Assembly (NCBI GenBank): GCA_038496445.1
Contig: JALMLS010000271.1
Coordinates: 62,001 to 126,000, forward strand
DNA: 64,000 nucleotides
Reading direction: 5' to 3'
Origin: Trichosphaerium sp. ATCC 40318
Lineage: Eukaryota > Protista > Tubulinea
Shown here: positions 1,138 to 62,980 of the stretch, piece after piece
Layout of the letters: each line of letters begins with the position of its first letter
How positions within the stretch are numbered: position 1 is the stretch's first letter
The notes under the pieces: model-generated
Database searches by the model: none
Told to the model about the DNA's origin: nothing
Seen by the model: only the letters and a program-made list of their open reading frames with translations
Position numbers and translations under genes: made by a program

Positions 1138-2416
1138 AATTTTTCTCGTTGTACGCGAAATAGACGCTGTTTTGTTAGTATATACGCCTGTTATATAAGA
1201 TAAGCAATTCCATGACCTTTTTGGTCATTGGGCTTGGTTTTTTTTTTGATGTAACGTGCACGCGGGTTTTGTGTACCCGTAGGGAACATACGGTTTCGTG
1301 GTAGCCAAATAAAAGCATGAAACCTAAATGAGGAATGTTTTGGGAGAATAAATGTAGCTGAAGGCTGTTTTAGTACAAAAATAGACTGACTTTGACCTTA
1401 ACTACTTCTAAAGGCGGCAGCGCGCGTTCGACTAGTTGTATTACCTGCTCAAAGGCATTACAGTACTTGGTAATTCTACATTATTGAGATATCTCCCAGA
1501 CGTCCAAATGAACACGAATGCATCGACAGGTACGTTTTATACGCGTTTTATCACGAGTTATTGACATTAGACGCAGTGTGAAAGATCTAGAAGTTTGCCT
1601 TTAAATAAGCGCAAACTATTAACGCATGGCCCTTTGGACATAACAGAAGTGCTCCTAATGGTATTCGCACATATTCTCCCGAAGGATAGAAAAAGTTGTC
1701 AGGCTGTTTGCGTACGTCTAGTTATACTTACAAACCGCCCAAACAAACAAAAGCTATGTTGGTGGTAACCCTTTGTTGGATGTAACGCCAAAATCCTTTT
1801 TTAGCATTGCCCCCTTTAGAGGCCATAACGTTACTCCGTAAACACTATCTAGCATTTCCTCATAAATAATTTTATTCTGGTGTCGTCCAAAAATTCATTG
1901 AGAAAAAAAAAAGTTTCTTTTACAAAAAAAGTACCGCTGTACCAAAGTGATTCGAACATGTGAGTCGCTTTTCGGCACATAACGTTTTTTTTTTAATCTT
2001 TTTTTTTTCCTTTATGTGTGACATGTTCGTTCCTAACCAAGCTTTTTATAGAGTCGTTGGTATTGTGTTTGTAAAGATTATTCTATAAACTGGGTTACAC
2101 TAACAAACTTGCATTTCTCCGACAACAAAACTGCCTATCTCAAGGCTAGTAATAAGCACGTATATAGGTCGTGTAATACTAGACCTTGTAATGCGAACAG
2201 AGCTGAGAATACCGAGATAAATGATGCACGTAGTTGGTTCCTCAAGAAAAACCCAAATCCGCCTGTTGGTATTGATGTACAGGGAACGCGTATTGTTTTG
2301 GTGCGTTATTACTTACTGAGTTTTTGAAATCGCGCACAAATGTGCACGACTGAGGTAGCATGTTGGCACCTACAACTACTGCTATTTTTATGAAGTCTTC
2401 GTTAATGGTGTTGTAG

Positions 2417-3500: not shown

Positions 3501-5302
3501 GTTGAATTACGTCATAAACTTGCCAGGGCGTTAGCAACAGCAAAATGGCAATTCTGCGCTAATGGTTCAATTGATGTTGACAAAGTGACTGTATTCTACG
3601 ATGACAACGATTGCGAAGCAAAAAAGCTTACATTATGTGCTAAAAAACTGCACTCAGTTAAGAAATCTGGGGTTCTAAAAAACCCTCACATTGTCGCTAA
3701 AGAAATTACGGAATCAGATCAAAATAAGCCTATAATGTTAGATAAGATACAAGTACGTACTCTCCCACATGTTTTCATGACTTTCGGAAATTTACCGCCG
3801 ATGTATTTTCAGCTTCTTTTTTTTTTTTTTGGATTTGTTGGTACTTTCGTTGACATTCTTCTACAGAGTATGCCTTCACGCGCACGTGAAAATTTTGCGC
3901 CGTCTTTTCATCCATCGGAGTACGGAATACTAGATGAAGTACGTATACACTCTTAGCAACAAAAATACGATTTTAGAAAGGACACGTGGGAACAAAAACC
4001 AAAAACTGATTATCACGTGATATTTTTTTTTTTTGGAAATCAAAAAAAAACTCCGCTTTCGTTGTTATCGACCGACCTTTTGGATTTTCTGACACTATCT
4101 CTAAGGTTCATTCTCTTCTGGCACCAGACGCTACTCGTATAAACGCAAGAAAGATGTTTTTGACTGTTAGAGGACAACAGAATGAACACACGGATATCTC
4201 AACAGCAAGTTGCCCACAGGACTTATATGGTGATCTTGAAGCGATAGGAACACTTGTTGTTTGTTTACCTTCTGATTTTGAGGTACAACGAAATTTCCCC
4301 AACCATTTTTCTTCTTCGTCATGCTTGGTTCTTAGACTAATTACTGCTTCTATAGGGAGGTCTTCTAACACTTAGGCATGCTGGTAACACCAAAACGCTT
4401 GATTGGAGCGTTAGATCAGCTTCTGAAATGCAGTGGGCTGCATTCTCTAAGGATGCTACAATAAATGTTTCTCCTGTTACAAGAGGACATCAAATCACAA
4501 TCACGTACTCCTTGTATAAATCACAAAAAAGTGGATCCTCTTCTGATCGCGGAAAGACAGATATAAATCCATTGTATACTCCTCTTTCCGTAGCGTTGAA
4601 AGATAAACACTTCTTACCACAGGTACGTCAAGTCGACCCCCAACACAAAAAAAAACCCAAAAGAAAAACAAGTGTCCAATATTTTTTTTTTTGATTTCTG
4701 GCCATGTTGGACTAAGGTCTAGAGCTTTTTGTTTATTTATTTGTTTGTGTACTTATTGTTATATTTAGGGTGGTAAAATTGGGTTTGTTTGCCAGCATAT
4801 GTATAAAAACACGCCGGTTTATGGTTCCAAGTCTAATCCGGTAAAAGGCGCTGATGCTGCTTTGTTTGCTGCTGCAAAGGCTCTTTCTATGAAAGTCAAG
4901 GTTGTACCTTTAACACATGAATGTACGTAACATAATATATATAACAAAATCACCCAATTTTAATCACGTTGTAAACACGTGCATCGCCAAAAAAACTAAG
5001 TTAAATATTTTCAATCTCAGTTTTTTCTTCTTTTTTTTTTTTTTTCAAACATTCTTCTTTTTATCTCAGACTGACACGTGATTTTGTTTTTAGATCGTGA
5101 AGTTCTCCATGGTACTCCTCAATTAGCTTTGGATCCTCTTTATCGTGAAAGTGCTAGCAACGCTTTTCTAGACTTCACAGTAAATGCACAAGATGTATGT
5201 TGGTGTCAAGACTTATCTGATGTAAAGAGAAGAGGAGCTGGTATTGTAATTGATGTTGCAGCTTTTGAAGAGCGTGTAGAAAATGTACTTTTATGTCAAT
5301 AG
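3501..5302 (+). CDS. 2OG-Fe(II) oxygenase-fold protein with degenerate catalytic residues (multi-exon; true start upstream and unresolved)
   Basis: Spliced translation GTLVVCLPSDFE|GGSLTLRH...DWS...QWAAFSKDATINVSPVTRGHQITITYSLY...FLPQ|GGKIGFVCQHMY...KGAD matches the remembered pattern of a fungal/protist 2OG-Fe(II) oxygenase family. Confidence 0.7.
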
Positions 5303-5869
5303 AAATAAATAAATAAGAAACATAAAAAAAAACTGCCATCAACTTTTAACTACAGTGTGCAATCATATGATTGAGTGACCTTGGGTCTTTTAGAAGGAAA
5401 ATAGAGGTTAGAACGAAAACCATCACACTATTTGAAAAAAAAACCCACTGCCCTCGAAAATGTCACACTACGTTTTACAAGAAAGATATCCAAGTATATT
5501 TGTTAAATACGCACCATTACATCCATACAGTATTTACCTTCTTGTGGTAGGTGTAGACAAGGGCATTGGTTTTTTATTGATTATGTAAGCTGTACTTAAC
5601 GTGTTTGTATGCACGCTTGAGGATTTAGAGTAATCGGTGGTATTGGAGCTCTTGGAGATGTTGGTCCAAAGAACCACTTGTGTGTCCATTAAGTACACCG
5701 CATACTCTACTTAATTGTAAGAAGCACTCAAGTATGTTGATATAACTCTTTTACACGCTAGCTGGTTAGTTTTTGTTTACATCTCGCAAGTGATAATATT
5801 TGCACGACTAACTGTACGTTTAGTATCTAATGGAGTCACAAATAAAGCCTGTACCATAAGAGTGTTACA

Positions 5870-6805
5870 ATGAACCAACAAAGTGATATCTCGTTGATAG
5901 ACATTCCTACAGAGATACTCGCTCATTTGCTTCAATATTTGAAGAAACGCGAAAGATTCTCAGTGTCTCTCAGTTGTATGCGATTATTGGCAATTATCAA
6001 ACATCATGTTGGATATGAGCATATCACGTTAACATCAAGTGAAGATTGTTCGTTTATTTCAGGAAGCCCTCTTCTAAAAAATACAACAATATCTTTACGT
6101 TTTAAAGAAGAAACAGATACAGATCTTGCTCTTCTTTCTGGTGTTAAACGTCTTGGTATTCGTTCAAACGACCACATAACTGATAAAGGACTAACATCAA
6201 TTTGTGGTGTAAATATGTTGCTTCTATTAGCATGTTCAGGTATTACAGATGAAGGTTTGAAGTATTTATATGGTGTTCATGTACCGTCTGTATTTTATTG
6301 TTATGGTATAACAGGTTCAGGAATTAAACCACTTGCGAAACACCTCAAGAAAGTTAATGTCATGAATATTGGACAACGACCAACAGAGTTGGGAATATCA
6401 GCACTCAAGGGAATACCTGATATTGGCATACCATTTGCCTCCTTAACAGATGGCATGTTGTCTATGTTGGCTGGAGTTCACACTATCAATATTAGGTTGT
6501 GTCAGTTAGTTACAGACAAAGGAATTTCAGCATTAGCAGGTGTACATACAATTGATTTGAGTAGTACATATGTGACAGACAAAGGTGTTTCAGCATTGGC
6601 TGGTGTACATGCAATTTATCTCTCAAGCTGTGAGAAAATCAATGGATCGTGTATGAAGAGCCTTTCAACCGCTCACACTATTGATATATCAAATACAAAG
6701 GCAACAGACGATTGGCTTGTTCCACTTTCTGGTGTCAAGGTAGTAATCACTAAGAATTGTAGCGGGCTCACAGACAAGGCTTTAAAAGCAATTAAAAAGG
6801 TGTAA
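5870..6805 (+). CDS. F-box / leucine-rich-repeat protein
   Basis: Uninterrupted 311-aa ORF: F-box-like LIDIPTEILAHLLQYL followed by 21-22-aa repeats of type ALAGVHTIDLSSTYVTDKG. Confidence 0.85.
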   Translation: MNQQSDISLIDIPTEILAHLLQYLKKRERFSVSLSCMRLLAIIKHHVGYEHITLTSSEDCSFISGSPLLKNTTISLRFKEETDTDLALLSGVKRLGIRSNDHITDKGLTSICGVNMLLLLACSGITDEGLKYLYGVHVPSVFYCYGITGSGIKPLAKHLKKVNVMNIGQRPTELGISALKGIPDIGIPFASLTDGMLSMLAGVHTINIRLCQLVTDKGISALAGVHTIDLSSTYVTDKGVSALAGVHAIYLSSCEKINGSCMKSLSTAHTIDISNTKATDDWLVPLSGVKVVITKNCSGLTDKALKAIKKV

Positions 6806-7008
6806 TGGCGGCTATAGAAAAGGATATTAGTCACACAAGCCAATCCTAGACAGTGACAATGCGATCAAAAGACTAAGTGTTGTGGCAATGTAATTTAATA
6901 TTATCAGGTACTATGTCTGTACACAAATAATAGTATTCCATCAAGTTGTTGAACTTGTTACTATAGAATGATTTGTTTATTTTGGCTAAGTTTAAAACAC
7001 GTAAATCC

Positions 7009-7935
7009 TTAAAATATGACCTCACATCCGCTCAATTTTAGACCTTTTCTGCAACTAGCTGTTACTCTTTTTGTATTGCACAAGTAGGCTATTTTAACAC
7101 CTTTTAGAGCCATTACTCCTTTATCTGTTACAAACTTACAACAATCTTAGTGAATAGTGTGTACACCAACAAGCGCCTTCAAGCCAACATCAGTAACATT
7201 TGTTGAAGATAAACCGATTTCATGTACTCCTTCCAGGTCTGATATACCTTCATCTGTTATTTGTTTACAGCTGCTCAAATATATACTATGAACACCTGCC
7301 AACGCTTTGAGACCCTCATCTGTAATGGAACAACAACGCAAGTTGATGTTATGTACACCAGACAAAGTCTTAAACCCATCATCTGTTATTTGACTGCAAA
7401 AACCTAAGAGGATAGTATGAACACCAGATAATTCTTTGAGACCCTCATCCGTTATAGCACAACTACACAAGTCAATATCATGTACACCAGACAAAGCCTT
7501 AATACCATCATCTGTTATTCTTTCACAATCCTGTAACTTGATTGTATGCACACCAGCTAAAGCTTTGATACCTACATCAGTAACATTGGTCCATGATAAG
7601 TCAATATTATGAACACCAGATAATGCTTTAATTCCGTCATCTGTGATACGCTCACAGCCCTTTAAATTAATCGTGTGTACACCTTCAAGTTGTTTAATAT
7701 GAGCATCAGAAACAGTTCTAGTAAGTCCACTTAGATTAGTGGTTGTATTTGAAAGCAAAGGGCTTCCACACAGCAAAGTCATCTCGCTTTCAGTTTTTAC
7801 GTCAATGATATTGTAACCTACGTGGTTGTGGACAATATCGTGCATTAGATTGCATGTTTGGGCTAAACGTAGTATGAATGTGTCACATTTAAGGATATGA
7901 ACTATTAACTCTACAGGGAGTGTAACAAGGTACAT
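7009..7935 (-). pseudogene. F-box/LRR gene with a premature TAA (truncated allele or pseudogene)
   Basis: LVTLPVELIVHIL F-box and about 9 LRRs. TAA at 7147-7149 sits at the conserved Leu of HTIxL, and the repeat pattern continues in frame (DCCKFVTDKGVMALKGVK...) to TAA at 7009. Confidence 0.75.
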
Positions 7936-8282
7936 ATAATTACACTGTTGCGTTTAGTTGCTTGTTTGCTTCTTTAAAGACTGTTACTTGGCCAAGAAAG
8001 TGAGTTGATTGACCTACTCTGACCACGTTGTAGTAAGCACCCTATGGTAATTTACCACTGATAACCTTTTAAGCAGGCTCATCGTTTAGCGTTAAATGAA
8101 CACTGTTACAACAATTTTCGCTATAGCTACACATCAGCAATTATCACATAAAAACAACTAGTTTTTTTATTCAGCGTTTTCTTGTTTTTTCCATCTTCCA
8201 TGCATTCCATCCCACCGATAATTAAGTTCATGATTGACTAATGAGAATGGAATACAGATGTAGAGTAATAAGTACATTTTCT

Positions 8283-10721
8283 TTATTTTTTTGAAGGTGT
8301 TTGGGTGATAATATTTCTGTAGGTATGAATTGATGCGACAATAAAAATTAAAAGAAGTGAAATCAAAAATAGAATAATACCACCTATAAAAACAGTCAGC
8401 TCTATATTTGTATTGTAATGTATAGTACCTATTCTCGAACCCAAGTGGAGTACAAGTATAAAAGTATAGCACGTGATCATCAAAGTAGGGAAGAGAACAC
8501 GGCTCATCTTGTCAACTTTTTTCGCAACCCTATTTTCAAAACGAGTTAGCTCTTCTGATTGTGGCTGTTGAGACTCACTCTTTGGTAAGCATTGCTGTTA
8601 CCGTTAATTCAACTAATGGCATGAATGATAGTATCACATTAACAAGCGCAAAACTTTCAAACCATGTAATTCTACGGGAGTACTTTAGAAAAAAAAACAA
8701 GTTCAACAAACTATGGTGCTCACTTATTAGCTGGAGGAAGGAAGCGATTCGCACTTCCCAGTAGGTTGATTTGAGATAATAATCCAAATAATGTCGGTAA
8801 CACACGGGGTAGCAGTATACCTTGATCAAACCAAATACCAGTCCATGACACAAGCGTCATTATGACGCCCGGAAAAATCTAAAAATAGGACATTAAAATA
8901 AAACAAAATAGCCCTATCAGTTACATACTTGGCGTATTAAGAAAGGTCCCCATATTCTATGTGCATCTACTGTAACTATATATTCAGAAAATAGTATCTT
9001 GCCATCCGATAAACCGTTTTTAATGTCAAGATTTGCGTTTCTTATTTCAAATCCTTGAATCTGAAAGTCTGAACTGTAAGCGAGTAGCTCTTTGAACAAT
9101 AATAAGTAACTAGTTGTAGAGACGGATGCAATAATGTTTGTAAGCTTATGCGTACGTGATTCTTCCTTATCACTGCTCAAAGAAAAGTTACAAACAGTCT
9201 TTCCGCCAGTCTCAGAAGCGAGAACTCCCAAATCAGCTACTTTCCAATAAAGTTGTTGTGTATCAAAAGGGAACTCTATACTGTTAAATCCAAAAGAGAA
9301 TATAGACTAATACGCTCGTTATATAAACCTTTAGAATTTTGTCAACCAGTTAGAACTTCAATCAACAGCTACATGGTGATGAAGTCTAAAGTTGAAACAA
9401 AGGAAAAAAAAAACGGAAAAAAAAAACAAACCTGAAAGTATTGTGCCTTCCAGTGTACCCTTGTACTTGTAACATTTGGCGCAACTATCTTTATTTTAAT
9501 ATAAAAGATATAGTAGACATGACTGAGTGTACCTTGTATTGATTCAAGGTGAATCTCTGTATCGAAGATATCATTTTTAATATGATTTGATACACGAACA
9601 GGAGGGTTCCAAGGAAGCTGTGTTTCACTCGATAGGAAAGTACCGCTCAGACCAAGGTGTCGATAGCCCAGTGGGGTCATGGGCAGGTTCGTCTACCTTG
9701 GGTTGCCGGTTCAAATCCCGTGCTGTCCATTTCTCCTTTCACTGAACGAACAGTCTACATTTCCTCAGGTGGTGCTGAGACGTTGTTCCATTCGTGCTGT
9801 GGATAGTAGAGGATGGATTCTCGAGAATTGTTTCAGTGACCAGTCCAGGCTGGGACCCTGGTTAGTCGCCATCAAACACTCACCCGTCCGTTCCAATCGC
9901 GGTGTACATCGGATAGGCTTTGCCTAAAAACAGCGATCATACTTAATACACTCAAAAACAGCTTGCGGTCCAATGTGAACCAAGCGAAAATGATAACAAA
10001 ATTATTTCAACGAACTTGGTCAGTCTTCTAGACTTGACAATGCTTCCAAGGGCGGAGGGTCACACCCTCTTGTGATTACGAACTGTCTAGTAGATAGCGT
10101 CCTTGTCCTCCCACATTGAGAGCGACAGGTGCAACTCCTGTATAAACCCTTGGTTAGCACCAATGTATGCTAGCCTTAGATTGGGTCGTTCAGTGCAATG
10201 TAGACAAATAAAAGTAAAAGTAAAGTAAAGGAAAGTACCGCTCTCTCTAACAGAATTCTATAATATAAACGTAATAAGCTATTTGCAGGTAGACAAAAAA
10301 AAAAATCACGTGACATCAAGTCAATCAACTCCAAATCAAAATAACGAAAAAAAAAATCACTTTACCATCCTTGAATCCTCCCACATGTAATGAACAAGAA
10401 CATTAGCCAGAAATTCAGCGCGAACGTTTTGAATAACGCGTATATCTCTTATAACAAACGCTATATCAACCGGAACAGGCAGAGGACTATAAGAACGTTA
10501 ACAAGAGAGAAAATCTGTCTTCTCTAAAAAGTGAATAAATAAAAAGAAACGCATTTTTCCTTACAAGCCGTTAATTGAACAGCAAGCGCAGTGATATAGC
10601 TGAATCTTGAAGATAAACTGTACCTTGGTGGGTTTCGAGTAAATCTCGATTGAGGCGGTAACGCAGCAAGGGATAGACCCAGATACATAAAAACCAGAAA
10701 GATTTTCCCAAGCTTGAACAT
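8283..10721 (-). CDS. Pentameric ligand-gated ion channel subunit, Cys-less (Pro-loop) type; interrupted by a SINE
   Basis: Spliced exons give a signal peptide, PVPVDIAFVIRDI...HYMWEDSR (WxDxR), PWNPPVRVSN (WxP), FPFDTQQL, M1 PFLIRQ|IFPGVIMTLVSWTGIWFD, M2 PRVLPTLFGLLSQINLLGSANRFLPP, M3 ITWFESFALVNVILSFMPLVEL and M4 VDKMSRVLFPTLMI, plus one extra hydrophobic helix. Confidence 0.88.
9649..10228 (+). mobile_element. tRNA-derived SINE (about 580 bp) with 15-bp target-site duplication
   Basis: TSD AGGAAAGTACCGCTC at 9634-9648 and 10229-10243; A box TAGCCCAGTGG (9664-9674) with paired D-arm; B box GGTTCAAATCC (9708-9718); no internal TTTT; 3' tail of (GTAAA)n; GC-richer than flanks. Confidence 0.9.
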
Positions 10722-11100: not shown

Positions 11101-12951
11101 CTACAATAATTGTTCTGACAATCTTCTGATACAACGGTCTCTTTCAATAAATGCTGGTGCTACTATTGTAGGCGGAATAGGTGGGTTGAAATTAAACGCT
11201 GATATACCCTCACTTATTGGTACATTTGTAGCCAAAACAGTAACATCAAAAGTTGCAATATCAATTGAAATGTATCTTCCATCACGACAGGAAGCCACCA
11301 AAGTACTTGTTGATATTGACGTTAAACCTAATAAACCAATTAATAGTAACAACTTGTATAAAAGCTTGCCTGCAATATCACATCCATCTAGAGATGTGGT
11401 ACTTCTTTGTGGCGTACATGAACCAGATAAAAAAGTGTCTGAGGCTGTCAGTATATTATTACCACCCATGTATAGAACGCCATCAACAATTTCACCTGTT
11501 CTGTGTAAGTAATATGACTCAATAACTATTTCACTTGCCTGCTGAAGCGAAAGTTCTTTGGTTAGTACAGTAAGGTGTAAATCTACAGTTTTCTAAATCT
11601 ATCTCATGAACAAATGGTACTGGACCATGTCCATATATTATTCCAGTCTGTTTATCTACCATCAATCCAAAGATTTGAGTACCAACGACAATACATTGTT
11701 TATCCTAGGAAAAAGATTATGATGTAATATAACATGTTGAGCTGTCTCATACAATTTGACAAGTGTAAGGATCAACTGAGAATATTCGTTGTTGTGCTAA
11801 GTTTGTTGTAATGTACAGTATTCTATCAAGTGCAGCACTGTACTCCAAAGCGATGGGAAACCTTTCCAGTATTGGATTATCGCAGGCTGAATAGATAATT
11901 AGAAATACAATTAGTCTTGTTAATCTGTACACCCAACAATTTCATTTATGTTTGAAAGCAGCCGATAGTCAAATCCTAGTACAGTATCTCCCTTTGCTGT
12001 GATTAGAACATTAGGCGCTATTGCTCCTTCAAAAAATAATGAAGAAAAGCCACCAGTTCGTGAAGGTAGTGATGTTGTAAACTGAGTTATTATGGATGTA
12101 GAAATGTCCAAAGAAAAGAATCTTATTGGCTCTAGATTAGTGACAATAATTTGATTATCTGAGATTGCTGTCATATCTAGAAACAGTTATGACAACATAA
12201 CAGAAAAAAGAAATACCAGCACTGCTTATTAATGCCGATTGTGGATAGTCGACTATTTGAGAAACTACACAAGATGAAGGTCCTGTTAATGGTGCTATAG
12301 CGACTCCTTGTTCCAATGCAGAAATGTATAATGTATCTCCAATTATTTCAACTATTATTAGAACAAAGTTAGACACAACAAGCAAGTACTGCCTTCGGAC
12401 GCACTTCCAGATAGTCCCGATTGAGTATTGATGTTTACTTGACAAAATTGACTAAATGAGCAATCTGTTGTATCTATCTGAACGATAACCCCACTGGATG
12501 TAAACCCATATAATATTTCTGAAGCTTTGTCAATAGCAATACTCTGAAAATTGGAGCTCAAAGAGCAAGAATGCTTAATCAAAGTAAGTAGTGTATTGTT
12601 TGTGACTTTTCAATATTTTGTTTTCTTATGTTACCTTTACTTCACACGTGCGTGGATCTACTTGCAAAAGATCATCTACAATTTTAACGAATACTGTTTG
12701 TGTTGATGGCAAATAAGCCATAGAAAAAGATGAACCAATATTTGAACCATCACATGCTAGATTACGTTAGAACTTTATCGTTTATTGTAATAGAGTGTTG
12801 TACTTTGTACAGCAGACGTTGGATCATCTATAGGTCGTATTTCAAACCCGCTACCACCCTCTCCAATAATAATAAATGCGTTATAATCTTGTGATAGTGA
12901 ATACGCAATAAACAAAGACAGAAATGAGAAAAACCAAGTTGTGGCGTTCAT
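11101..12951 (-). CDS. Secreted tandem-domain (putative double beta-propeller) family, copy A; lacks the Pro-rich linker
   Basis: Signal peptide MNATTWFFSFLSLFIAYSLSQ; family motifs GFEIR, VDPRTCEV, IAIDKA, EIIGDTLY, GFDYR, CDNP; C-terminus PAFIERDRCIRRLSEQLL*. Confidence 0.8.
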
Positions 12952-13199
12952 TTTGTGTTTTTCTGTTTTGTTCTTTTTGTGTTTTCCCGTTAATTAAGAT
13001 TCAGTTAATGATTTGGGATTCATCGGGTTCCGAGATAAATACACATACAAGCAACTTACTTGCTACTAAAAAGTCAAATTCATCTCAATCCTCTTTTTTT
13101 CCATGTTTGTTAACCAGCTTCACTTTGGGTCTAACCGACACCAAAAAGTCGTTAAACGCTTCGTTAACATGTCTACTCAGATCAGACTTATAAGAACGT

Positions 13200-14071
13200 G
13201 CTAGGGCATTGTATTTTTCTCAAAGTTTTAATACTGTATTCAATTGTTGACTTTGTAAGTAACGGAAACACTTTCTTGTCAAAACGGCGCAAGTATCCTC
13301 TTACAAGTTGTTCACATTGCCAAATTACAGATTTTCAAGTACTTCGAAAAATTGAAGTGCTTCCCAAAGCGAAGACTGCTATACAAAGTGTGAACACCAA
13401 CTAAGTACTTAACGCCTTTATCACTATATTTGTGAAGCTAACATCAATCGCATGTACTCCAGCCAATACCTTTATCCCTTCATCTGTGATGTGATGACAC
13501 TTGCGTAAAAAAACTGAATGAACACCAGCTAACGTCCTTGAGTACTTCGTCTGTCACTAAATAAGTCTAATGTATGTATATTGCCTTTAGACCTTCGTCG
13601 TTAACATAAGTGTCTGAGAACCGTATTGTTTTTACTCCAGACAGATGTTTGAGATGATCATAAGTTATACATTTAGTACTACATCTTAACTGATGTAAGT
13701 CAATACTCAACGCATTTAAAAGCTTTAAAATCAGATGGTTTCAGGTTGATATGCCACGTTCATCTTCAAATACAAGACCATACGCTTCTTTGAGGTACTT
13801 TAAATGCTAACGTTCGAAATAAAACTTAATGGATAGAGTGTTTGTCTTGATGAGATGTCGGCAGTTTTTTGAATAGTTTTTTGAGCTTTTGTTTTGATTC
13901 GATGACAATCACTCTTCTGGTTTCATATCCCACGTGTTGTATTGCTATCATTTTTAATAATTTTGATGTACGTACTGTGGAATGTAGATAGAGGGCAAAC
14001 GAATTGTAAAATAATGACAATAAGTTCAACAGGGATATCATCAAGAATGCGCTCTTTGAGTTCATCGCCAT
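13200..14071 (-). pseudogene. Decayed F-box/LRR gene
   Basis: F-box ILDDIPVELIVIILQF, QHVGYE segment and LRR remnants (LAGVHSVFLRKCHHITDEGIKVLAGVHAIDVS) split across frames. Confidence 0.7.
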
Positions 14072-14365
14072 TTATTTTGGATAATAGAATTTGATTATGA
14101 GTAACGTATAGACCAGAGACGAGAACTAACGCGATATTAGCTGCACTGTGACTTAATATTTTTATGGGTACCAAACCTACCTTTGCTGTATCTTGGAACG
14201 TTGTACACACAAGAATGTAAGAGCTGTTGCGACTGAGTTGAAAGTTAAGTGATTCTATTTTACTTGTGTTTCAAGTTAGACATACAAGTAAACAAGGTGA
14301 TACAAAAAACACGTGTTTTTACAGAAGGTGGTTATGTTTTAAATCCAACAATGTTCATCTCTTCT

Positions 14366-15149
14366 TTACATCATAGCACACCGTCTTTTTGTTTTACTAG
14401 GTTTCGGTCGTTCTAAATGTTTTGACATCTCTCGAACAAGTTGATGAAAAGCTTCATGAACATTTGTGTTTGTTTTAGCTGATGTCTCAAAAAAAGGTAT
14501 GCCATAATGTTCTGCAAGCTCTTGTCCTTCAGATGTTTCTACTTGTCTCTCGTCTTTTAAGTCAACTTTGTTACCAACTAATACACCATAGAAAAACTCT
14601 GGGCTCTTAATCCTATCAACAAGTGTAAGATTGACTCTTGGAATTTGTCTAGCTGAAACACTAGTTTTTTTGTCATCTTGGTCTTCACACGTACGTAGTA
14701 ATAGCCTTGCAATACTTTGGTATTTCTTCAAAGGATGTGCGATCTGTAACGGAATACACAATAAGAAACCCTTTCCCATAACGAACGTTCTAAAACAACA
14801 AAGTAAAACTTCCTGCTCAACCAAAAAAAAAACGTGATAGCTTTCGAAAAATACTTACACCATCAAGCATTTCAGAAGGATCTCCTCTACCTGCTGTATC
14901 CAAAATATCCATCGATACCATATAATCATCTACTTTGACTAGTTTGCGGTGTCTAAAAGGAGTGTGGGTCTTTGTAGTTGTCGAAAAAGGTTAACAGGCC
15001 TCAAAATAGCTTAAAACTGGCTAAACCGCGTACCCATCTTCTATAGTCGGGTCATAGGACTCATAAAAGTGATCCACTACAAACCGGAGTACTAGGTTTG
15101 ATTTTCCCACCCCAGGTTCTCCAATAACTGCTATTTTGTACTCTGACAT
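14366..15149 (-). CDS. Ras-family small GTPase (4 exons) with CaaX
   Basis: [17 protein letters not shown]...YDPTIEDG|HRK...[16 protein letters not shown]|[22 protein letters not shown]...GNKVDL...FETSAK...KRRCAMM*. Confidence 0.92.
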
Positions 15150-15519
15150 CAATGGTATAGCTGGAGTGTGTTTGAATGTCGTAATTTTGTATCCACCAAT
15201 ATTTATAAATAGAATTCACTGAACTAATTTAAACGAGCACGAATATAAGAAGAAGTTCAAGTTGTGTACTGTATCTATGTTGGCTGGTTCTTCCTATGAA
15301 CAGTTTGTTATTTACGCTACCAAAAAATTGACAAAAACAACAATAAAATCTTGAAAGAGTAAGCTTGTGAATGCGACTCACTACTTCGTCTTTTCTACCT
15401 CTTAATTTCATCCTTTGGCTGCCTTCGTTTTCTGCCAAACCAAGACAGCTGTCACTACCTTGCTTGACGATCTAGGTTAAACAGCGATGTGCTTAGTACC
15501 CGTGTGTTAAATTAAATTG

Positions 15520-16040
15520 GTTGCCAAAAGTGTGTTTAGTTGAGAGTATCTTTAGCTTATCAGTAAAAGGTATGTACAATACTCTATCTAATGCAGCACT
15601 GTAAATCAATCCAAAAGCATCACTTCCAAATTCAGGATTATCACATGCTATCAAAAGATCATTAGTTTATCAGGACATCCTATTCTGTCGGAAAGTGATC
15701 GATAATCAAATCCTGTTACTCCAAAACCTTTTCTTGCGATTAAAGTCTCAATCACACGTTGAGGTGCTATGGTTGGTGGTGAAGTTGGCATGACAGGAGG
15801 CATTGTTGTATCATCTGGTGGTGGCGGTTCGTAGGTCCTTCGAGTAATATTGCAGATATGCCACCTCCATTTAGAGGTAACGATGTTGTAATCCTTTTCG
15901 TGCTGATAAAGACGTTGTAAAATCGGTTATCGTTGTTGATAAGCGTCTGACTACTTTAGGCATGTTGCTGTTGATAAGGCAACACAAGTAATAAGGCGTC
16001 TTTAATTCTGGACATATCCTTGTGATTGATCCATGTAGCG
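15520..16040. pseudogene. Scrambled fragments of the tandem-domain secreted family
   Basis: Minus-strand remnant (LPLNGGGISA, PPPDDTTMPP, GFDYR, CDNPEF; frameshifted) at about 15520-15935, next to a plus-strand remnant (VAVDKATQV...VIDP) at about 15960-16035. Confidence 0.7.
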
Positions 16041-16434
16041 TTTATTTAGCACGTGTACTATCATTGGAAAAACAAAAAAGCGTTGCTAAGTTATAACTTA
16101 ACGTGATAATTTGTTAACTTGGCTTTATACATGTTTGTGGGATACAGTTTCTGTAGGCAACTCAATGTGTACAATTTGCAAGGTACAAGATTACAGGGAC
16201 ACCAAATGGTATTGAGCTTCAGAGTTCTTTTGGTACTGCTGTACGCTATTCGCAGGCTCAATGTTTTTGACATTATTGTATCTACCAAGCCTTTTGTGAT
16301 AACGTAGCGCTATAATCCAACGATACGTTTGACTGCAACTTACACAGCTTACTAGGAGTGATGGCAAATTAACTTGTATTTCAATACCAACTAAACAATC
16401 GATTGTGGCAATCGTCTTACAGTTGTTACAAGTA

Positions 16435-18371
16435 TTATACTATTGATTGTGACAATCGCCTTACACACCGCTCTCTATCAACAAATGCTGGTGCTACAGG
16501 TGGAGGTGGTGGATCGTAATTAAATGCAGATATACCAAAGCTTGTTGTTGCATCAATATCAAAGGCAGTTACAGTATCAGTGGTGATGTCAATAGAGATG
16601 TAAGTTCCACCAAAACAAGCAGCAACCAATGTACTTGATGATATTGATGTTAAACCTGAATAAATTGTAAGTTGTACAAACTCTACACACTACACAATGT
16701 ATGTGAACAACTTACTACTAACAAAGCAATCACCAACATCAATTGATCGTGAAGATTCACATGACCCGGACAGAAAGTCAGGCAGCACATCCATAGGAAC
16801 ACCAGCAGTACCAGCATATAGAGTACCATCAATGATTTCTCCTGTTACAATAAAGTATATTAGTAACTAACACATTTGTGATTGGTTTTTAAATACACGT
16901 GCCACTTAAGGTATTTATAGCACGTGCGACACAACTCATAGTATATTTACAACTTTCAGAAATCAACTTCATAAATAAATGTTGCTAATCCCTGTGCAAA
17001 TATTCTTCCACTCTCTTTATCTGTCAGCAAAGCCATTCTAGCACTGGTGGCACATATTTTATCCTTTAAAATTAGTTCACAGTAATAGTTAATACAACTT
17101 ACAATTTCACACGTGTAAGGATTGACTGAGAATATCTTTCGGATATCACCAGCAGGAATGTACAAGATTCTATCAAGTACATTATTGTAAATCAATGCGT
17201 ATGGATCCATTTCAAATTCAGGATTATCACATGCTATTAATAGATCATTAGTTGGGCGGATGGCAATTGAAAAGTATTCGTACATCCTAAAATAGTGGTT
17301 GTGTCTGAAATCAAGCGATAATCAAATCCTGGTATTCCTTCTCCTTTTGATGTGATAAAAGCATCAATCACACCACGCTGAGGCGCTATTGTTGGAGGCG
17401 GCGTTGGAATGACAGGAGGCATTGTTGTATCATCTGGTGGCGGCGGTGTCATAGTTCCATCAAAAAATAGTGCAGAAATGCCACCTCCATTTAGAGGTAA
17501 CGATGTTGTAAATTGAGTTATCGTTGATGTTCCAATGTCTAAAGAAAAGTAGCTATTTTGAGAAACGATAATAATTTGATTATCTGATACTGCAGTAATG
17601 TCTAGGTAACGAATAGTAAGCACAAAAGGAGAACGAAAAGTAGTAAAGTGTGTACCTCCTGAAAAAAAGAAGCCAGGGTTGTCCACTATTTCAGTAAGGA
17701 CACAAGCCATAGGTCCTGTTAGTGGTGCTATACCTAGTTTTCTATCATTTCCAGAAATGTACAATGTATCACCGATTATCTCCACTAAATAATAACGTGA
17801 ATTACATTGATTGAAATAGGCCTTTATATAAACGTACTATTGTTTACAACAATCCCAATATCAGTTATGTCTACTTGACAAACAGGACGGAATGAGCAAT
17901 CTGTTGGATCTATCACAGCAATACCACCATCTCCTACAAGGCCATATAATATTTGTGTTGCCCTATTCACAGCAATACTTGAAAACGGAACTAAACAAGT
18001 ATTCTAAAAAGAAAATCAAATTAACCTTCTTACCCTCCTAAGGAAGCGTACCTTTACTTCACACGTGTGTGGATCTACCTGTATTAATGCATACGGTGAT
18101 AATGTGATTATAAATAGTGTATTCGTGGATTGCAAATACGCTGCTAAACTGAACACACCCAGGTGGTCACATGCTAAAAAATGTAAGAATACTCTCACAC
18201 TTCGGTAAAATGTCTAGTACCTTGTAGAACCATTGTTGGATCATCCATTGATCGTATTTCAAACCCTGTTTCCAGTCCATCTTTAATTACAAATGCGTTA
18301 TTATCTTGAGAGAGCGTATACGCAAATAAACAAGATAGAACGAGGAATAATAAAGGTGTTGTTGTGTTCAT
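16435..18371 (-). CDS. Secreted tandem-domain family, copy B
   Basis: MNTTTPLLFLVLSCLFAYTLSQ signal peptide, family exon structure, PPPPDDTTMPPVIPTPPPTIAP linker, C-terminus PAFVDRERCVRRLSQSIV*. Confidence 0.85.
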
Positions 18372-60862: not shown

Positions 60863-62980
60863 TTAATCGTCATCATCGTACACCTCTATAAACGGCTCTT
60901 TAATTTTTACTGACTTTATGTCTGCTGGACCATCAAATCCTGAATGTCTGGGATTACCCGAACCACCATAATGCGATACACGTTTGGCTTGCTTCTCTTT
61001 TTCTTCAATAAGTTCTTCAATCGCTGCTTTTTCTACTTTTTTAGGTAACAATGCCTCATTAATACCACCGGGTATTTCATCACGTGAATATCCTAACATA
61101 TCCTCATAGTATATTCTCTTTTGTTCTTCAAATGGCATCAAGATACCATCTCCTGAAGAGCTGTCAAACGGATCAAGTATACGATCATCTGAAGGTGATA
61201 GTTCTTTAAAGAGAGCTTGATCAGATGTCTCTCCTTGGATTGCTGTAGCAATCATATTATTGACTATAAGAAAGAGAGAAGTGTCAGTAACAGAAGGGAG
61301 AAATGTGTAGAATGAAGGAGCAAAGAAATAGATTTGTGTAAAAAAGACGTACTGCTGTTGCATAAGGTAAAAGCATCATTCTCGTACTGACATTCATGCA
61401 TCTGGTAATTATGTATACCAAGGCACTTATCTAAATCAGATAGCTCATCAGGACATAGTGCAGATCCTATAATTAGTTGTTATTGGACAGTTTTAAGCAA
61501 CAGAACATGGCTATGAAAAAAGATAAAAACGAGAAGTTAAAAAAAATCACGGTTTTTTTATGTCACAGCCATTAACAACACGCATTATACTTCACTTGTG
61601 AATACACACGCGTAATATTATTGTGTAATTATTTCGGTAGGTTTTTATACTTTTAAGTAGTTGTCATGGAGTTGGTGTACTCTAAAAAAGAGACAAGAAA
61701 ATCTCGACTCTGTTTCTGTGAAGAAAAAAAGAAAAGAAAAAAAAATTAGTTTTCAGAATGACAAAGAACGCGACATATACATTTTTAACACATACCTATT
61801 CTCATCATAACTCCTAAGCTGTCATACTCACTTTTGTACTTAAGCAAAAAGTAAGATAACTACAAAACGAGTACTAAAACAACAAAAAACAAAACAGAAA
61901 AAAAGAAAAAAAAACTCAACTAACCGCCTCGTATCTATCTCGTAATTGTGTCCTCCCCATTCTTTTTTGTGCCTTATCCCTCATCTTTGGTATAATAGAT
62001 ATTAACCTATCCTCTTCTCCATTGTTTACTGTAATAGATCCCTTTTGAGGCCTTAAAGAGATACATTAGCAAAGGAGTAAACAACAAACAAATTTGCAGT
62101 AAAGAAAGTTAAAAAAACTTAGCATAAATGTTGTACGTACACTGGAGGTATATTACCCATTAATTTATCATGACGGGATTCTGTTTCTGCAACTAACTTA
62201 TCTCGTAAAGCTGTACAATCCTTTGGATTTCTAAATGACTAATGAGGCGTCGAGTTTCGACAAGAAGACGAAAATGGAAAAGAAAAAAAAAATGGAAAAA
62301 AAAGAACAAAGCCAAAGCACAAAACAAAAGCAATGAAATTGATCTGTATCTATTGGAACCAATGCAAAGTATAGTATATAATGCTTTAAGCGTATAATTG
62401 GAACAAAATAGCCGCAAGGAATGTCAAGACTTAAAAAAAACGTTTAACCTTACCTGACATTATTCAAAAAGTCTATCTCTTCTTCTGCTTCGCAGTCCCT
62501 GAACTCCCAGTATAGCTTCGTTGGTACTAAACAGATTTAAAAACAAAAGTACAATAAAACGGTCCAAAGTTGTTTTAATGAGAAGTCGTTAATGTATTAA
62601 AGCGTAGGAGATGTTTTATTGTTCGTTTAACGGACCTAGCCAAGGTAAAAAGCATTTAAATGAGTCTTCTATTTGTACTGTGCATGCCTGCATTATTTGT
62701 TCATCGTCTAAGCCTAACGTGGTGAACGAATCGCTGAAAAACATGTTAGCCGCATTGAGTTCACAAAACGTTGCCAAGTACATAAATTACTAAACGTACT
62801 AGCAATCTTGCTCCTCTAAAGCCATTCTCGCACATCTGTCCAGTTCAACCTGTGCTAGTCTTATATTACGTTACATTTGTGCGTATGGAAGGCGTAGATG
62901 TGATAATTACCTTTCTGTTTGTTCAATATTTACAATCTTGTTAATTTCGCTGTCATAAAACGTAGCGTCATCTAGCATGA
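60863..62980 (-). CDS. Multi-exon hypothetical protein with acidic C-terminus (5' exons unresolved)
   Basis: Terminal exon ...GILMPFEEQKRIYYEDMLGY...EVYDDDD* and several GT-AG-bounded exon-like blocks upstream; no family recognised. Confidence 0.45.

Follow-up and report, generated by a model that had tools for sequence, protein, structure and literature searches.

Contig JALMLS010000271.1 of the Trichosphaerium sp. ATCC 40318 assembly (GCA_038496445.1) was analysed over a stretch of 64,000 nt (positions 62,001 to 126,000 of the forward strand, hereafter the window). At window positions 9649-10228 it carries a 580-nt insertion, which interrupts a coding exon of an ion-channel-like gene. This insertion is very probably a copy of a recently active, low-copy short interspersed nuclear element (SINE) of the marine amoeba Trichosphaerium sp., which has a tRNA-type head and is mobilised with a resident family of long interspersed nuclear elements (LINEs). 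An earlier note, made from the sequence of the window alone, had proposed a young tRNA-derived SINE at this site; its overall observation was confirmed, its testable parts held, and its first reading was supported.

Anatomy, copies and age of the element

The element and its immediate borders consist of the following features (window coordinates).

9634-9648: left copy of the target-site duplication (TSD), host exon sequence; AGGAAAGTACCGCTC, 15 bp, identical to 10229-10243
9649-10228, plus strand: the SINE, 580 nt; a second copy (C352:4093-4661) has 99.65% identity and different flanks
9650-9730, plus strand: tRNA-like head with a putative RNA polymerase III (Pol III) type-2 promoter; 72% identity to the resident tRNA-Arg(TCT)
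9664-9674, plus strand: box A, TAGCCCAGTGG; fits TRGCNNAGTGG, 15-16 nt from the 5' end of the element
9708-9718, plus strand: box B, GGTTCAAATCC; fits GGTTCRANNCC, 44 nt from box A start to box B start
9731-10004, plus strand: SINE-specific body; found elsewhere in SINE-related loci only, with no match to the LINE
10005-10205, plus strand: LINE-derived 3' module, made of the final ~30 nt of the LINE open reading frame (ORF) 2 and a structured 3' untranslated region (UTR)
10206-10228, plus strand: tail with an A-rich start including AATAAA, then AAAGT/AAAAGT repeats; also present on LINE copies
10229-10243: right TSD copy, identical to 9634-9648; contains AAAGTA, a microhomology to the tail repeat

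The perfect 15-bp TSD described earlier is indeed there, with AGGAAAGTACCGCTC identical at 9634-9648 and 10229-10243. As for the 5' terminus, the SINE starts with (A)GACCAAGGTG and its core begins with GACCAAGG at 9650, a start shared by four independent copies; the first base, A at 9649, may be an untemplated addition. The 3' terminus is AAATAAAAGTAAAAGTAAAGTAAA, in agreement with the (GTAAA)n tail reported by the earlier note; the number of repeats differs in the sister copy on contig C352, and resident LINEs end in the same tail. The 580 nt are non-coding, with no credible ORF, and have a GC content of 47% (versus about 36-37% in the window). The reported absence of TTTT from the element was verified on the plus strand, where the first such run lies downstream, at 10427.

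Regarding copy number, the SINE was searched with BLAST against the whole 70.3-Mb assembly, all 38 candidates were scored, and flanks were compared. A lone copy with neither related elements nor an empty site had been named earlier as an outcome that would speak against a SINE; the search returned 2 full and about 5 partial copies, spread over 7 contigs. Sequence of the head and body is confined to six loci besides the window, namely L002-L006 and L020, the last of which has the head alone.

L002 (C352:4093-4661): full length, 99.65% identity; one substitution, shorter tail, unrelated flanks, own 16-bp TSD TATTCTTCAAGTTTTT
L003 (C45): element positions 2-351, 97% identity; 3' part missing
L004 (C87): element from position ~196, 93% identity; older variant, 5'-truncated
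L005 (C86): fragment, 90% identity; older
L006 (C37): fragment, 82% identity; older
L020 (C158): element positions 2-69, 93% identity; head alone

In L003 (positions 1490-1520, minus strand) the break at element position 351 is followed by ~14 nt that match the 3' hairpin region of the SINE in reverse complement, which may be a scar of inversion or twin priming, or chance.

The C352 copy provides evidence of mobility. Its left flank recurs on contig C261 with 99% identity, and the two contigs align in two blocks, one of 1.85 kb with 96.8% identity and one of 0.94 kb with 97%. On the C261 side the two share precisely the 16 bp of the TSD, and no element separates them. C261 thus presents an exact empty site with one TSD unit, so the TSD of the C352 copy arose on insertion. 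The arrangement is more than chance, since the SINE is found again at another locus, there with a TSD of its own and an exact empty site. In line with the earlier reading, the element is a mobile non-autonomous retroposon with a tRNA-type internal promoter. The SINE is also young, because the two full copies differ by one substitution, as the proposal of a recent insertion would have it. The suggested search for an empty allele succeeded for the C352 copy only: a genome search with both flanks found no empty allele of the window site, for which no second haplotype is assembled.

The regions around the filled and the empty site (L121, C352:2242-5589, with the SINE, and L122, C261:33328-36675, without it) are ~97% identical. 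They represent either uncollapsed haplotypes, i.e., alleles, in which case the SINE on C352 would be a heterozygous insertion, or the product of a recent segmental duplication. The C352 insertion is younger than the ~3% divergence between these contigs.

The draft assembly combines long and short reads (PMC10521059) and full copies number two only, which leaves some room for an assembly artefact or a duplication at the DNA level instead of retrotransposition. The probability of such an origin is close to negligible, however, given perfect TSDs at two unrelated loci together with the exact empty site, precise 5' ends combined with tails that differ in length between copies, and the existence of the older 5'-truncated copy L004.

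The head, the 3' module and the partner LINE

According to the consensus comparison, both Pol III boxes are intact, as the earlier note had claimed: each matches its consensus, and the distance of 44 nt from start to start equals the spacing in tRNA genes. The D and T arms without an acceptor stem were also recovered. The head has an intact D stem (GCCC/GGGC), a T stem with 4 of 5 pairs and no acceptor stem; its anticodon stem is by eye degenerate. The head was compared with 64 tRNA genes of the same genome, which comprise 34 different sequences with 16 anticodons. Among these it is most similar to tRNA-Arg(TCT), with 47 identities in 65 columns (72%) and a 62-nt overlap; the local alignment score is 23, against 11.2 +/- 1.6 for 200 shuffles (maximum 18). 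As the tRNA sample is incomplete, this match does not fix the parent tRNA.

Dedicated detectors give a different picture of the head. ARAGORN called no tRNA anywhere in the window, and the Rfam tRNA model RF00005 had no match either with E<=1 on 1.1 kb or with E<=10 on 101 nt of the head. Other Rfam matches in the SINE region (small nucleolar RNA and CRISPR) are at chance level. The head is predicted to fold into a structure other than a cloverleaf, with a stability no better than that of shuffles. With ARAGORN and RF00005 blank and the acceptor stem missing, a functional tRNA gene was rejected. The head is nevertheless tRNA-related, though no tRNA by the detectors.

The failure of these detectors would also suit an element that is not transcribed by Pol III at all, i.e., a LINE-derived non-autonomous element, such as a template-switch chimeric retrocopy from a LINE 3' end, transcribed by RNA polymerase II (Pol II) and bearing the A and B boxes as a relic. 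The low copy number and an invariant AATAAA just 5' of the tail, a possible Pol II poly(A) signal, point the same way. Moreover, EhSINE1 of Entamoeba histolytica, the best-known amoebozoan 'SINE', has no small-RNA precursor (PMC2996970), and Pol II transcription has been proposed for the EhSINEs. This explanation is nonetheless unlikely for the element in the window, where both boxes are full consensus matches at exactly the 44-nt tRNA spacing, the head is 72% identical to a resident tRNA, one precise 5' end lies 15 nt upstream of box A in four copies, and there is no run of four T. The absence of such a run is compatible with Pol III transcription, the boxes themselves being known as sequence motifs.

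As for the 3' part, 30 or more other loci are 72-85% identical to SINE positions 357-580 (BLAST). In loci L009 and L007 long RVT_1 ORFs precede the shared stretch and stop ~30 nt inside it. Extension of L009 yielded a complete, apparently intact LINE of ~4.66 kb (L098, ~4006-8675; contig C433, about 12505-17174), flanked by the 15-bp TSD TACTAGAACAAAATT. Its ORF1 encodes 385 aa with no Pfam match, and its ORF2 encodes 1092 aa with the Exo_endo_phos (APE) and RVT_1 (reverse transcriptase, RT) domains. ORF2 residues 3-843 align with human L1 ORF2p (E=5e-37), a match that does not fix the LINE clade, because solved structures offer only L1 and R2 for comparison as LINE proteins. The tail of this LINE, AAATAAAAGTAAAGTA, is the same (AAAGT)n tail as that of the SINE and not poly(A); TSDs are 15-16 bp long for the SINE and 15 bp for the LINE. 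Since the homology at the 3' end sets in ~30 nt ahead of the LINE stop codon and the tails are the same, the SINE comprises the end of ORF2 together with the complete 3' UTR and tail of this LINE family. A LINE sharing the SINE 3' end, which the earlier note had expected, thus exists as a resident APE+RT family with the same pentanucleotide tail. BLAST of the SINE body against two LINE loci gave no homology outside the 3' module. A segment of ~40 nt is common to the older SINE copy L004 (C87:40955-41355) and the LINE copy L010 (C132) and has been lost from the young SINE copies; descent of the SINE 3' module from an L010-like LINE lineage would fit this distribution.

The secondary structure of the module was assessed in an alignment (A1) of the SINE with 13 LINE-type 3' ends. 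Nested hairpins were predicted with RNAalifold, one upstream hairpin was added by hand, and 24 pairs were tested. Standard pairing is found in 94.1% of cells, compared with 31-42% after a shift of the 3' partners by 1-3 columns, and changes on both sides (compensatory) are found for 14 pairs, compared with 0-4 in the shifted controls. None of the 500 shuffles matched the observed pairing values. The single-sequence fold of the SINE 3' module recovers the same hairpins, and the loop region GGTGCAACTCC is near-invariant across the aligned 3' ends. The comparative analysis thus presents the LINE/SINE 3' domain as a well-supported structured RNA, to which the LINE ORF2 protein (ORF2p) would bind.

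The stretch AGACAAATAAAAG before the tail repeats (window 10186-10214; A1 columns 180-192), which includes AATAAA, is also near-invariant. It may serve as a poly(A) signal for LINE transcripts made by Pol II, or it may belong to the priming site.

A covariance model of the last 105 nt, with 150 of ~15,000 crude candidates scored, indicates at least 55 such 3' modules in the genome. A head with A and B boxes was searched for within 1.1 kb upstream of 43 other modules and found at none (0/43), with the C352 copy detected as the positive control. Among the modules inspected, a tRNA-type head therefore stands on two alone, the window SINE and the C352 copy, and no sister SINE family on the same tail was found.

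Taken as a SINE mobilised with this LINE family, the element would propagate as follows. Directed by the internal A and B boxes, which would stem from a tRNA (tRNA-Arg(UCU) being the nearest candidate among the tRNAs sampled), Pol III would start ~15 nt upstream of box A and would read past the SINE, which has no run of four T, into the flank. The ORF2 protein of the resident APE+RT LINE would recognise the 3' module, i.e., hairpins with the invariant GGUGCAACUCC loop region followed by (AAAGU)n repeats. Target-primed reverse transcription of the RNA by this protein at a nicked target would then leave duplications of 15-16 bp.

According to SINEBase, a SINE is shorter than 1 kb, has at least 100 copies, and is, along 60 nt or more, at least 60% identical to a tRNA (PMC3531059). 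The element agrees with the length and interspersion requirement (580 nt, non-tandem and non-coding, on 7 contigs), as well as with the requirement of similarity to a small RNA (tRNA, 5S or 7SL), having 72% identity over the 62-nt overlap. The copy threshold is operational and not part of the mechanistic definition of a SINE, and an exception is stated for repeat-poor genomes (PMC3531059). Mechanistically, the element has internal A and B boxes, a 3' end shared with a LINE together with LINE-like TSDs, and, for the C352 copy, a filled and an empty site. It also has 3' stem-loops supported by compensatory changes and a tandem-repeat tail, as expected of the stringent type; for stringent-type LINEs and SINEs, Hayashi et al. 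2014 (PMC4176376) describe binding of ORF2p to the 3' stem-loop.

Several points weigh against a tRNA-headed, LINE-mobilised SINE. The copy number is far below the usual SINE range, and 2 full and about 5 partial copies fall short of the SINEBase threshold. ARAGORN and Rfam reject the head, a cloverleaf is not its predicted fold, and the parent tRNA is uncertain, with 34 distinct tRNA genes compared. The closest LINE 3' ends are just 70-85% identical and do not fix the current partner subfamily. The assembly holds no empty allele of the window insertion site. Finally, both Pol III transcription and dependence on the LINE are read from sequence.

The host gene and the effect of the insertion

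The features of the interrupted gene that bear on the insertion are as follows.

8283-10721, minus strand: host gene, divergent and pentameric ligand-gated ion channel (pLGIC)-like, about 8 exons
10244-10257, minus strand: upstream part of the split exon, NSVRE; native acceptor ...tattatag directly before it, at 10258-10265
9534-9648, minus strand: downstream part of the split exon, SGTFLSSETQLPWNPP...ESIQ; GT donor directly after it, at about 9533
9693-9695, minus strand: hypothetical cryptic acceptor (candidate TAG) within the antisense head; keeps the frame when joined to the phase-0 donor near 10365

The SINE lies in antisense orientation inside exon 3, which would belong to the N-terminal extracellular domain of the pLGIC-like gene. 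Removal of the element and one TSD by script reconstructs a single open frame, NSVRESGTFLSSETQLPWNPP..., which runs on through SGTFLSSETQLPWNPPVRV...ESIQ to the GT donor at about 9533. In a paralogue on contig C110 the same exon is uninterrupted, and 29 of the 43 residues of the restored peptide are identical to it, with no gap. Both the placement in a coding exon in antisense and the exact restoration of that exon, as put forward in the earlier note, are borne out by this contiguous, gapless counterpart.

If the SINE is retained, the frame enters the element by way of its antisense tail and meets a stop after 47 codons. With the native splice sites in use, the mRNA would be 595 nt longer and would contain a premature stop, which predicts a null allele or one prone to nonsense-mediated decay. 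The eight exon blocks between 10721 and about 8424 are all open, and their identity to the C110 paralogue is 47-81%; nothing else in the host gene therefore looks broken, in line with the lack of decay remarked on earlier. As a separate observation, the block of the C110 paralogue that aligns to window 8920-9306 (L100:5581-5952) contains two adjacent stop codons. These are either an extra intron or damage, which bears on which of the copies is functional.

Regarding the identity of the gene, its exons were searched singly against Pfam and the PDB. The exon at 10360-10488, just upstream of the insertion, matches positions 25-62 of Neur_chan_LBD with E=0.0099, and the last conserved exon (8424-8546) matches positions 207-230 of 233 of Neur_chan_memb with E=0.024, both below the Pfam cut-off. 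In the PDB, all five matches of the exon at 8723-8878 (52 residues) are to M1-M2 of GluCl or GABA-A receptors (E=0.07-1.6, best 0.066), and the top two matches of the exon at 10360-10488 are to the N-terminal domain of GABA-A delta; the pLGIC matches of the two exons have E=0.07-0.9. Weak but colinear, these matches suggest a pLGIC-like protein. As for the longest exon, the PDB search gave nothing relevant, and the ESM Atlas gave low-recognition, uninformative matches to mu-homology beta-sandwich families. A genome-wide search with Neur_chan_LBD (PF02931) had no match, yet its controls were blank as well. A weak Pfam match to SLAC1, obtained for the last exon with mechanical ORFs, was judged to be transmembrane-helix noise.

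The open state of the remaining host gene raises the alternative that the insertion is tolerated, the SINE being removed from the mRNA or partly exonised so that the channel is still made. The earlier note had pointed to a TAG at 9695-9693 as a cryptic acceptor, and this site does exist and keeps the frame: splicing from the donor near 10365 would give ...M/TNLPMTPLGYRHLGL-SGTF..., in which 15 residues replace NSVRE. Its context, GGCAACCCAAGGTAG followed by ACG, is neither pyrimidine- nor AT-rich, unlike that of the native acceptor. The resulting intron would be about 670 nt long, versus roughly 60-110 nt for the other introns of the gene, and the native acceptor at 10258, intact and much nearer to the donor, would compete with it. 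A script found six further in-frame, stop-free GT...AG combinations in the enlarged exon, none with a good consensus. The ends of the SINE are not GT...AG. Its exact removal through splice sites in the TSD was rejected, because the TSD contains no AG/GT. Moreover, the undecayed look of the gene needs no rescue when the insertion is recent. A tolerated insertion is thus very unlikely, and exonisation would be an in-frame possibility with a weak candidate acceptor.

Antisense Alu elements in primate genes offer cryptic splice sites and can be exonised in this way. In contrast to Alu, the insertion described here is in a coding exon and not an intron, its acceptor lies in the antisense head and not the antisense tail, and it is a candidate site only. 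Unless exonised, one recent, probably null, insertion among at least two channel paralogues amounts to ordinary mutational load.

Known elements and neighbouring genes

Among known systems, the eel pair UnaSINE1/UnaL2 and zebrafish ZfL2 (PMC4176376) share the design of the Trichosphaerium elements: a tRNA-type head, an unrelated body and the 3' end of the partner LINE, with conserved 3' stem-loops and a short tandem-repeat tail in place of poly(A). In contrast to those systems, the host here is an amoebozoan, the 3' module is a multi-hairpin domain of ~170 nt and not a single stem-loop, copies number about 7, and the partner ORF2 can be aligned with L1 ORF2p from end to end. EhSINE1-3 and EhLINE1-3 of Entamoeba histolytica (PMC2996970) are likewise amoebozoan non-autonomous elements with LINE partners, about 0.5 kb long and flanked by TSDs. 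For EhSINE1, no small-RNA precursor was identified, the A/B-like motifs are imperfect, and there are about 400 copies; according to its authors, it fails the tRNA/7SL-based definition of a SINE (PMC2996970). The Trichosphaerium SINE, in contrast, has canonical boxes, measurable similarity to a tRNA and a handful of copies. AfuSINE2 of Aspergillus fumigatus (PMC5063351) is also a small family in a compact genome, with a tRNA-related head and TSDs; it belongs to a different lineage, and for the element described here a LINE partner and a shared covarying 3' structure were identified.

A limited literature search brought up no description of an amoebozoan SINE with a tRNA head. In the Trichosphaerium genome paper (PMC10521059) the words 'transposable' and 'SINE' are absent and 'repeat' occurs once, for a MORN-repeat protein domain, so the LINE/SINE pair is a new annotation. 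The SINE is new as a family and conventional in design, and it is probably new for its phylum. With chances a little short of even, the pair could be the first bona fide tRNA-promoter SINE with its partner LINE in Amoebozoa, the LINE being an L1-like APE+RT element that relies on a pentanucleotide tail instead of poly(A) and on stringent recognition of the structured 3' domain, in a system that is possibly still jumping.

As read here, the SINE extends the classical design of tRNA head and LINE tail to Amoebozoa, the Entamoeba 'SINEs' having no small-RNA head, and the LINE 3' domain is a candidate RNA for ORF2 binding. A system that is still jumping would also supply alleles made by natural insertion, among them a knockout of a Cys-less pLGIC paralogue, as well as strain markers. 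We know of no genetic tools for Trichosphaerium.

Other genes were also noted in the window. Two intronless ORFs of 311 and 262 aa face each other at 5870-6805 (plus strand) and 7147-7935 (minus strand); both are of the 'GVHxIxL...ITDxGxxxL' leucine-rich-repeat type with F-box-like N-termini. On the minus strand, 11101-12951 and 15493-17785 hold tandem paralogous multi-exon genes, which have motifs such as IIGDTLYIS...APLTGP and a proline-rich stretch in common, and the first of them opens with a signal-peptide-like sequence. Five ORF pieces of these paralogues (four from the first gene, one from the second) gave no Pfam match above noise, with only DUF7485 at E=0.19. According to the ORF list, an exon at 14366-14824 (minus strand) encodes the C-terminal half of a small Rab/Ras-like GTPase (NKVDL...ETSAK).

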